Part shown: positions 39,501 through 42,500 of the stretch, in pieces
Layout: each line of letters begins with the position of its first letter
Position numbering within the stretch: position 1 is the first letter of the stretch
NCBI RefSeq assembly: GCF_006345805.1
Contig: NC_043013.1
Span: 7,316,001 to 7,380,000 of the forward strand
Length of the DNA: 64,000 nucleotides
Origin: Octopus sinensis
Taxonomy: Eukaryota
Direction: 5' to 3'
Position numbers and translations under genes: made by a program
Notes under the pieces: generated by a model
What the model saw: the letters and a program-made list of their open reading frames with translations, nothing else
Told to the model about the DNA's origin: nothing
Databases searched by the model: none

Positions 39501-42500
39501 TCATTTCAGTGATAGTTATGTACGTGTGTATATACAACATTGACCATGTTCTTTTCCTTATGCTTTTCCATATAATTAATCTTTTCTGTTGATTAACATT
39601 AACTGCAACAGGAGACAAAAAAAAAATAATAAACAAAGTTGTTAACATTACTAAATAATTTAAATTTATTACTATATCAATTTGTTAATGTCTGTATATA
39701 AAAAATATATATGTATATAATTTAGAAAAGATTTATTAATATAATACAAGATGAATTTATAAATACATAAACAATTTAATTAATGAATTATCATTTAATA
39801 TCAAATATAAGTCTTATTGATATGTAACACATATTTTAAAAATCTGTCTTACATTTATGCATATAGAGCCTAATGTTATTTTATTATGATATAGTTGTCA
39901 CACATATGTATCAAAATGAAATTGATAAAGGAATTTGCATAATCAATTAATGATGTCAGGACACCCCTGAAAGCTTTGTCTTTCTTGAAGTACATTCAGT
40001 GTAAACCAGTCTAATACAACCCACTTCACCCCTGACAGAAGAAGCAAGATGAAGTAGGTTAGCCTAGAAGTGAAGTACTGTCAGTTAGCTAACTTCCCAC
40101 CATTCTTCATCACTTGCATATATTCTCTGTGTGTATATTTATGAATATATTTACACTAAATCACTGCTTATACATTGAGGAAAAATTCCTGATAAAATTA
40201 CTTTCTCGTCACATTCAGCTAAATTAAATAACCTTGTGTTTGTTATGTAATAGTTATATAGTTGATGATGTATTTATGTAAGTAATCGAAACAGCTGTAA
40301 AGCAAAACAAATGACACTTATCAAATATCATTGATATCTATTTTCTATTCTTCATGTGTATATGGCCATTACCTGCATCTGTATGTACAGACCAGGGCAA
40401 TATAGTTTTATGAAAGACTAGTAGTTTTTTGAAAGCAAGTCTCATCTGTCATATATACACACACATATATACACGGCTGTCAGTTCAAATCCCACTGTGT
40501 AATGTAAAGTTCTCAGCAAGCAGAGTCTGCTGTGAAATTAATTTAACTGCATACATATCTTCCAAAAAAGGATGCCTTTGAGCCCAGCCAAATGAAATTA
40601 TATTATTGTTATTGTTGTTTTTATCAGTAAGGCATTTAAGGTGACTCAGGATATAAAATACATTATCCAATTCATTTCAAGTTCTGGATACTGTCTCACC
40701 TCTGGTGTCTTTAACTTTGATTCCCCCAAATTTGAGCCCTTGTGCCTATAGCAGAAAGAATTATTATTATTATCATTATTATTGTTATTATTATTATTAT
40801 TATTATTATTATTATTATTATTATTATTATTATTATTATTATTATTATTATTATTATTATTATATAAGGCAGCGAGCTGGCAGACTAGGTAAAATGCTTC
40901 ACTGCATTTTAACAATCTTTACATTCTGTGTTCAAATCCCACCAAGGTCAACTTTACCTTTTATCCTTTTGGGGTTGATAAAATAAGTACCAGTTGAGCC
41001 CTGGGGTTGACATAATCAGCTTCACCCCCAACAAAAAAAAATGTTAAACACAGAGTTTCAAGCCTTCTGGCTGTAGTAGAAAGGATTCTTATTAATTATT
41101 TAGTAGTAGTAGTAGTAGTAGTAAGAATCATAAAAAACATTTGACAAAATGTCTTCCAGTACATATTTCCACTCTTTACATTCTGAGTTCAAATCCCGCT
41201 GAGGTCAACTTTCATCCTTCTCCCTCTGGGGTATATAACATCCAGTTCCAGTTAAGCAATGGGGTCAATATGATTGATTAATTCACTCACCTCACAAATT
41301 TATAGTTTTGTTCCAATGTTAGAAACAATTACTGTTCATAGTAGTATGATCTATGTACATTTTATTATTTTTTATTTTGTTTTGTTTTTTATTTACTGCT
41401 GCATTTCACAGGATTCCTATATTTTCAAGGTAAGGTTTACTCTGACCTCACATCATCTGTGGTTTTTTTGTTTATTTGTTTTTCATTCTTTCAGCAGCTC
41501 AATAATAAATATATACTTTGTTTCAGTATAAAAGGAATTCAAATGACATGTAAATAATCATAATGAAATTACATACACAATAAAATTAAAGCAGAAAAGA
41601 AAAGACTAACAGTTTGGTAAGACTTGACAGGGACATTTTATTTAGGTATTTGATAAAAGGTTTCTAACAGGTCTCTAACAGCTGTTTCTAGAATATCCCA
41701 GCTACTGGAACATTGTGTCAAGTGAGGATTCCATAGGCCAAATATTCTCTCTCTGATGACAGGTTACTCAGCCTTTGGAATCCTCCCTTGACACAGTGTT
41801 TCAACAGCTTGGATATTCTAGAAACAACTATGTAAACCTTCTATTATGTAGCTAAATTGAATGTCCTTGTCAAGTTTGTCAAACTGTTTGCCTTTTATTT
41901 TCTGCTTTATTCTGTACCTCAGAGCTCAAGAGGAAGCCACTTTCAGCTGCTTTAGAAAAGCAGTCACAAAATCATGTCTTCAACTGCAGTTCAAACCGTA
42001 ATTTTAATGGCATATCAATTTAAGCACTTAGAGTGCATACCTATTAGTTTGGGCCACCCTGATAAAAACCCCTCATGTCTTTTAATAAAATGAATATGTA
42101 AGGAAGTAAAACTTGTGGTTGTAAACATTCTACACAAATTTACATACTTAAAAGGACAAAACTGTACATATTGTGGTATCCATAGTATACATTTGTGAAG
42201 AATTTCTCAGGTTTTTCACAAATGTAATTATAACTATTCAGGCCTGTCACCAGACTTTGGTGCCTAGGGATGCTTCAGAATATTCTGGATGGGTACTAAT
42301 TTGTAATAATACTAAAATGGAGTTTCAAAATAAGTGTATCACTGTAAATCTGAGGGTGAATCATTGAATAGTGAGGGAGCAGTGTGCTATCCAGAGCAGC
42401 CCATTAGTGATGGGCATATAACTATTAGTAATTAGAATGCTATCAAACTCACATCCCACCACTCTTTAACACACACACACACACACACACACACACTCTC

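Follow-up and report, generated by a model that had tools for sequence, protein, structure and literature searches.

Furry and its partner kinase Tricornered/NDR control the branching and tiling of dendrites. The present analysis concerns a stretch of 64,000 nucleotides (nt) from the genome of Octopus sinensis (NCBI RefSeq assembly GCF_006345805.1, contig NC_043013.1, positions 7,316,001 to 7,380,000 of the forward strand), which is referred to below as the window and is numbered from its first letter. It carries a Furry gene on the + strand, and one long intron of this gene holds two short exon-like units: a candidate microexon of 18 nt (m2) and a sister candidate of 27 nt (m1).

Microexons of this gene family have been described in vertebrates. 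A 9-nt microexon of mouse Fry and 9- and 18-nt microexons of mouse Fryl are listed as eMIC-dependent (PMC8797185 table S2), and in zebrafish the microexons of frya, fryb (18 nt) and fryl (9 and 18 nt) are neural and regulated by srrm3/4 (PMC12626424). A further study describes a FRY neural microexon conserved between human and chicken, as well as many neural microexons without UGC dependence (PMC12871342). The eMIC/neural-microexon programme has itself been described as bilaterian-wide; its exons typically have a long polypyrimidine tract, an extended AG-exclusion zone and UGC motifs close to the acceptor (PMC8797185). In the fly, the alternative exons of fry are listed as not eMIC-dependent (PMC8797185 table S2).

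Set beside these systems, the octopus locus is best explained if m2 is a genuine, frame-preserving cassette microexon of Furry, accompanied by the related m1 in the same 15.4-kb intron. We give this reading a probability of roughly 0.55.

Two candidate microexons within one Furry intron

Candidate microexon m2 occupies positions 41412-41429 (+) and consists of GATTCCTATATTTTCAAG, which reads in phase 0 as GAT TCC TAT ATT TTC AAG (DSYIFK). The elements around it follow in the order cattttattattttttattttgttttgttttttatttac, TGCTGC, atttcac, AG, GATTCCTATATTTTCAAG, GTAAGG. A U-rich tract at 41358-41396 (-54 to -16; 74% T, 79% pyrimidine) forms the putative polypyrimidine and branch-point region, with possible branch points inside it (TTTAC, A at 41395). 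It is followed by TGCTGC (UGCUGC in the RNA) at 41397-41402 (-15 to -10 relative to the start of the exon), a motif to which an eMIC-type SRRM protein might bind and which can also be read as YGCY. The 3' splice-site AG (cacAG/G) lies at 41410-41411, with an acceptor score of 5.7, and the 5' splice site AAG/GTAAGG at 41430-41435, with a donor score of 7.4. The two UGC begin at -15 and -12, and the AG-exclusion zone measures 65 nt. In its length (within 3-27 nt), its preservation of the reading frame, its position in a coding region and its freedom from stop codons, m2 resembles the microexons of the eMIC programme. It also has UGC between tract and AG with a long AG-exclusion zone, a feature that alone is not statistically distinctive. 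Past the donor, two YCAY motifs (UCAC and UCAU, at +19 and +24; 41448-41456, +) weakly suggest a possible enhancer of the Nova/Pasilla type.

A first-pass annotation of the window had placed the U-rich tract, the TGCTGC at 41397-41402, the AG, the 18-nt unit and the GTAAGG donor, and all of them are found in the sequence at exactly those coordinates. The UGC-between-tract-and-AG layout that it described is present at m2, the exon-like character of the unit is borne out by splice-site scores and by the maintained reading frame, and the host that it took for a dendrite-morphogenesis gene proves to be Furry by Pfam matches and homologue names. It found m2 and overlooked both m1 at 32750-32776 and a short interspersed nuclear element (SINE) whose tail position coincides with the U-tract.

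The splice sites were evaluated by scoring every AG..3-27 nt..GT unit on both strands (128 kb) with position-weight matrices for acceptor and donor, which were generic and not trained on this species. At the joint score level of m2 (acceptor 5.7, donor 7.4), m2 was the sole unit in the 128 kb, where block shuffles lead one to expect 0.01 per strand. When the thresholds were lowered to an acceptor of at least 3.7 and a donor of at least 5.4, m2 and m1 were the only units recovered, with none on the minus strand and 0.29 expected from shuffles; at thresholds of 4.1 and 7.3 the shuffles gave an expectation of 0.04 units.

Candidate m1 (32750-32776, +) is the 27-nt unit GGTTATGATAGCTACTCCTTTGATAAG, read in phase 0 as GYDSYSFDK, with the acceptor ggttttcag/ and the strong donor AAG/GTGAGG. 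In its context, tttgtgtctggttttcag/GGTTATGATAGCTACTCCTTTGATAAG/gtgagg, it is the second-best AG..GT unit in the window. Both candidates lie on the strand of the gene and in the same intron, both have a length that is a multiple of 3, and both are open in phase 0. Their peptides have the motif D-S-Y-x-F..K in common, encoded by different codons (Ser AGC/TCC, Tyr TAC/TAT, Phe TTT/TTC). By similarity to DSYIFK, m1 takes first place (tied) in the set of 2231 open AG-3n-GT units, which corresponds to an empirical probability of about 1e-3. Since m1 had been chosen by splice scores only, its likeness to the m2 peptide is independent evidence at about this level. A looser form of the motif, D[SDT][YF].[FYW], matches the window, translated in six frames, at only nine places, m1 and m2 among them. 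The surroundings of m1 are repetitive: it is flanked by UGUGU and (UG/UA)n, a poly(A)/(TA)n stretch precedes it at about 32590-32620, and a long (TG/TA)n microsatellite begins beyond it at about 32860.

The identity of the host gene is supported by Pfam matches on the + strand, all above the curated cut-offs: PF14228 (E 6.8e-9), PF14225 (2.1e-15 and 2.2e-10) and PF19421 (2e-28). These families, MOR2-PAG1_mid/_C and Fry_C, are those by which Furry proteins are recognised. A spliced query from 8.5-19.6 kb matches proteins that bear PF14228 and PF14225, and one from 25.7-44.7 kb matches proteins named 'protein furry' that bear PF19421 (Fry_C). The local gene model comprises exons at 25733-25873, 26316-26490, 26918-27099, 27899-27973 and 28286-28376 (+), followed by the two constitutive exons that enclose the candidates. 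Exon A (29020-29111, +) ends in phase 0 with the donor GAG/GTGAGT and is colinear with the segment FDFL[DE]xELE of homologues, its last residues in the window being ELEEVE. Exon B (44556-44744, +) starts in phase 0 after the acceptor ttttag/, has VYSDE among its encoded residues and is homologous to the corresponding segment of other animals. The exons from 25733 to 44744 chain into one spliced open reading frame (ORF) with AG/GT at every boundary, and the phase-0 intron that holds m2 extends from 29112 to 44555. The 18-nt unit is open in all three frames, so that compatibility with the reading frame is by itself a weak argument.

Further Furry exons are probable at 48569-52400 and 62067-62263 (+). 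For the exons near 48569, 51954 and 52142 no consistent chain of splice phases was obtained; exons may be missing there, or splice sites may be non-consensus. A protein search with the single exon ORF at 8554-8868 gave no match, and a PDB sequence search found no Furry structure. Two other long ORFs, at 58589-59074 (-) and 29907-30239 (+), resemble transposon tails and gave no Pfam match above the cut-off; they probably represent intronic remnants of degenerate retroelements.

Repeats are abundant around m2. A SINE-like copy, delimited by blastn against the window and by alignment with 7 other copies, occupies 41143-41331 (+), upstream of m2, with about 80 nt between the end of its body and the candidate exon. 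The A/T-rich stretch at 41332-41396 (+), which includes the U-tract, stands where other copies carry an (ATT)n tail. The AG, the exon, the UGCUGC and the donor are all outside the SINE, and the tail position alone overlaps the polypyrimidine tract. Judged from this alignment, the tract of m2 may be SINE-derived, in which case its 3' splice site would be lineage-specific. The copy is old, being 68-76% identical to the others. Dozens of copies of this one SINE-like repeat occur on both strands of the window (e.g., 54349-54526, 24068-24214 (-), 60840-60971 and 21621-21734); their core contains GTTCTGAGTTCAAATTCCGCCGAGGTCGACTTT ahead of an (ATT)n tail, and they are mutually 68-76% identical. About 160 nt downstream of m2, a palindromic element at 41587-41909 carries terminal inverted repeats of 30 nt that are 90% complementary and, inside them, arms of 72 nt (81%) around a 6-nt loop, an architecture like that of a miniature inverted-repeat transposable element or of a hairpin-forming sequence.

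The same intron in other animals

Exhaustive HMMER searching with a fish Furry protein (P0168) retrieved a bird FRY isoform and a protein of the cephalopod Argonauta hians. The bird isoform (XP_010154358.1) has the residues ELQ at the A/B junction, and the other vertebrate FRY/FRYL representatives are without them. A corresponding exon can be located in the fry locus of the fish Prochilodus magdalenae (L001), where an upstream exon ends with FDFLDVELEDGE at 13714 and the next exon, GETVDSFNWGARRRSMDSLD, starts near 18900. At L001:13913-13921, 199 nt past the upstream exon, the sequence tttcctttctccctgtatgtctgTGCcgtgaag/GAGCTGCAG/gtgagt contains a unit of 9 nt encoding ELQ, so that the layout reads ELEDGE, an intron with the ELQ exon, and GETVDSFNWGARRRSM. 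This exon has a Y-tract, a UGC at -10, a GTGAGT donor and further UGC on both sides, and its acceptor is very weak (gtgaAG). A scan of the fish intron at strict splice-score thresholds returned no unit, and the ELQ exon surfaced at relaxed acceptor thresholds only, which indicates that the scoring can miss microexons with weak acceptors. The exon is unannotated in the fish assembly; the deposited models split fry into four pieces, one of which reads into the ELQ intron.

The bird isoform and the fish exon together place the vertebrate FRY insert in an intron homologous to 29112-44555 of the window, with the same flanking exons and the same intron phase in both lineages. Counterpart exons have been defined by 'same intron, same adjacent exons' (PMC8797185), and by this definition m1 and m2 correspond in position to an exon for which eMIC dependence is listed. 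The inserted sequences are unrelated: ELQ (GAGCTGCAG, 9 nt) has no homology to DSYIFK (18 nt) or GYDSYSFDK (27 nt). The ELQ exon is probably the published 9-nt Fry/Fryl microexon, to judge from gene and length, not from coordinates.

In the homologues recovered from other animals, the junction is read in its skipped form. FDFL[DE]xELExxE-(G)... is colinear in arthropods, bivalve, crinoid, nematode, hagfish and mammalian FRYL, the bivalve Solemya being among the homologues that read across it. The closest protein available is the furry-like protein of the octopod Argonauta hians (52% identity in the regions compared; spider 45%, bivalve 38%). It has the motif DDYFSLGDR in common with the window Furry, and its alignment shows a 15-residue gap exactly at m1 and m2. 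The Argonauta entry ('furry-like isoform X4, partial', 2871 aa) corresponds to an uninterrupted ORF of 8613 nt (L002:1001-9613, GCA_054771915.1), and this locus is an intronless, retrocopy-like Furry with the A/B junction skipped. A metagenome scan yielded no relatives of the A-m1-m2-B peptide. By comparison with these proteins, a conserved linear motif would have received m1 and m2 as insertions specific to this lineage.

The position of the intron is ancient, given that gene models of fish and crab read into it directly after ELEDGE and ELESQ, respectively. A Branchiostoma floridae Furry model (P0196, residues about 2435-2450) carries an extra NSSGRQ at the junction ELEEAE/(S)EGLDNFNWG, which may represent a microexon in the same intron or an artefact of prediction. 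Because the 9-nt (ELQ) exon of vertebrate FRY/FRYL occupies the same intron as m1 and m2, the A/B junction is a recurrent, or possibly an ancestral, microexon slot. A stronger version would hold that the intron between FDFLDxELExxE and DxFxxGxRRxS is a bilaterian-ancestral, eMIC-regulated neural microexon slot whose inserted sequence has been fully turned over; we regard this version as decidedly doubtful.

Alternative explanations

A number of observations weigh against the interpretation of m1 and m2 as cassette microexons. The pattern TGCTGC..YAG..(3-27 nt)..GTRAG occurs 2 times in the window, compared with 0.51 expected, and at least twice in 11 of 100 dinucleotide shuffles; chance can therefore account for the bare motif pattern. 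One UGC no more than 30 nt from the acceptor is likewise seen at 5 of the 18 other Furry exons, and taken with the pattern counts this means that the motif alone is not significant. (Two UGC within that distance occur at m2 only, of 20 Furry acceptors.) A 5-nt unit at 61272 comes near the summed splice score of m2 under relaxed thresholds, which makes the splice scores alone suggestive and not decisive. The acceptor of m2 is not weak beside those of the constitutive exons of Furry, lying in the middle of their range, and its tract is rich in U rather than in UC. The U-tract stands at the tail position of a SINE, so that the 3' splice site is perhaps young and inclusion could be low-level noise. 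There is no UGC within 49 nt upstream of m1, so the UGC signature is not common to both candidates, and alignment reveals no DNA homology among the flanks of m1, m2 and exon B. More than 60 Furry homologues all show the skipped junction, and no transcript or protein with DSYIFK or GYDSYSFDK was found. Two word-indexed protein searches with the spliced Furry gave homologues of at most 52% identity and no near-identical cephalopod Furry protein or transcript. Finally, the ELQ exon is tied to the mouse and zebrafish event identifiers by length and gene only, not by coordinates.

The bare motif count would be compatible with m2 as a chance pseudo-exon, that is, an AG and a good GT that happen to lie 18 nt apart in an AT-rich 15-kb intron beside a T-rich SINE tail, with nil or negligible splicing. 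Such an origin would also suit a U-tract that probably comes from the SINE tail, the existence of chance units with similar summed splice scores, the three open frames, which make frame compatibility non-discriminating, and the lack of any m2-bearing transcript or peptide in the protein searches and the metagenome scan. It is nevertheless unlikely. The joint acceptor and donor scores of m2 are unique in 128 kb, a second unit with the same phase and a D-S-Y-x-F..K peptide lies in the same intron (empirical probability about 1e-3), and that intron hosts a microexon in vertebrates. The context of host, intron and sister exon thus makes m2 credible although its motif is within chance.

A second possibility accepts m2 as a real exon and denies it neural regulation of the eMIC type: the exon might be constitutive here, broadly alternative, or controlled by Nova/Pasilla (through YCAY) or MBNL/CELF (through YGCY and UG-rich elements). 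Here the flanks of m1, with UGUGU and (UG/UA)n and without a proximal UGC, are relevant, as are the CUGCUGC at m2, which doubles as a YGCY motif, the YCAY pair at +19 and +24, and an acceptor of ordinary strength for Furry. Precedents for other modes of control are provided by the many neural microexons without UGC dependence (PMC12871342) and by the fly fry exons listed as not eMIC-dependent. Nevertheless, the UGC pair at -15 and -12, the displaced U-tract and the long AG-exclusion zone fit the published eMIC layout, and the 9-nt Fry/Fryl microexon, which its length and gene would place in the same intron, is listed as eMIC-dependent and neural. We consider this possibility, too, to be improbable.

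Young SINE-assisted exonisation, in which the SINE supplied a U-rich tract ahead of a fortuitous AG..GT to give a lineage-specific exon of low inclusion and little function, would fit the end of the SINE body at about 41331, the alignment of 41332-41396 with the (ATT)n tail position and the lack of homology between the flanks of m1 and m2, but it is very improbable, given that the SINE includes neither the exon body nor the UGCUGC, that the copy is old (68-76% identity to others) and that the likeness of the m1 and m2 peptides would have to be coincidence.

Two other origins were considered and rejected. A recent segmental duplication behind m1, m2 and exon B is ruled out by the absence of DNA homology among their flanks. 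A recursive splice site, or a recursive-splicing exon, does not apply to m2, which starts with GATTCC, so that its joining to exon A (GAG/GATTCC) regenerates no GT.

Proposed function and comparison with known systems

The interpretation of m2 as a cassette microexon of Furry has several parts, and these are not equally firm. It is probable that m2 is a real spliced exon; if so, it is very likely to be alternative rather than constitutive. Neural enrichment of a real m2 would be somewhat favoured by analogy with the vertebrate genes, and on the same analogy its dependence on eMIC and UGC would be about an even matter. The vertebrate 9-nt insert at the same junction, which is suggested to be eMIC-dependent and neural, raises the prior for both of these properties.

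In the proposed mechanism, skipping of both m1 and m2 would join exon A to exon B and give the form seen in other animals, and inclusion of either or both would insert their peptides. The inserts would fall within the Fry_C region, in an acidic/aromatic stretch that is conserved and precedes a likewise conserved RRxS site by about 10 residues; there they would probably alter a docking or phosphorylation surface. Since ordinary exon definition would fail on an exon as short as m2, a neuron-expressed Srrm234 isoform containing the eMIC domain would bind UGCUGC between the displaced U-tract and the AG and recruit SF1/U2AF to the 3' splice site, with help from the near-consensus donor.

The general picture of microexon regulation is not changed by this locus: the eMIC programme already counts as bilaterian-wide, and recurrence in orthologous genes has been documented before. 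For the same reason the first-pass annotation overstated its case in suggesting that a cephalopod example would widen the programme to include molluscan brains, the more so as tissues of Octopus bimaculoides, neural ones included, are already part of a splicing data set of 20 species (bioRxiv 10.64898/2026.09.05.749416). The new element is the same-intron recurrence, or possible ancestry, between cephalopod and vertebrate Furry. If the cephalopod exons are neural, the same Furry junction would have been remodelled in the neurons of two lineages with independently evolved large brains, which would point to a functional surface, the acidic FDFLDxELE segment beside RRxS. The locus would then offer a concrete same-intron case in the debate over conservation and recurrent evolution of microexon programmes. 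If the slot is ancestral, it would have been kept in vertebrates (ELQ), amphioxus (NSSGRQ in the model) and cephalopods (GYDSYSFDK and DSYIFK) and would form a third deep case beside APBB and MADD, the two that are currently inferred; the position of a regulated insertion, and not its sequence, could then be what is conserved.

Among known systems, the 9-nt microexon of vertebrate FRY/FRYL (MmuEX0019666 / MmuEX0019673; DreEX0033622 = HsaEX0026467) stands closest to m2. It belongs to the same gene family and, as in the cephalopod, occupies the phase-0 intron between FDFLDxELExxE and (G)ExxDxFxxGxRRxS. The ELQ exon and m2 are both frame-preserving, and each has a strong donor and UGC close to its acceptor. 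They differ in that the vertebrate acceptor is very weak, whereas that of m2 is ordinary, and in that the cephalopod intron has two microexons. Regulation has been shown in vertebrate FRY/FRYL and would be putative in the cephalopod exons.

The wider bilaterian eMIC programme (Srrm234/SRRM3/SRRM4; PMC8797185) resembles m2 in exon length (at most 27 nt and a multiple of 3), in the UGC past the tract, in the long AG-exclusion zone and in hosts with functions in the neuronal cytoskeleton and morphogenesis. However, its tracts are UCUC-rich and that of m2 is U-rich, and m1 lacks the UGC signature. The exonisation of Alu/SINE copies in mammals is comparable insofar as the A/T-rich tail position of a SINE coincides with the polypyrimidine tract of m2; in Alu exonisation, by contrast, the exon body is antisense Alu, whereas the exon, AG and UGC of m2 lie outside a SINE that is in sense orientation. 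Finally, a parallel is provided by microexons that recur in the same intron of orthologues in distant phyla; those of vertebrates, possibly of amphioxus (NSSGRQ, P0196), and of this cephalopod look independent of one another.

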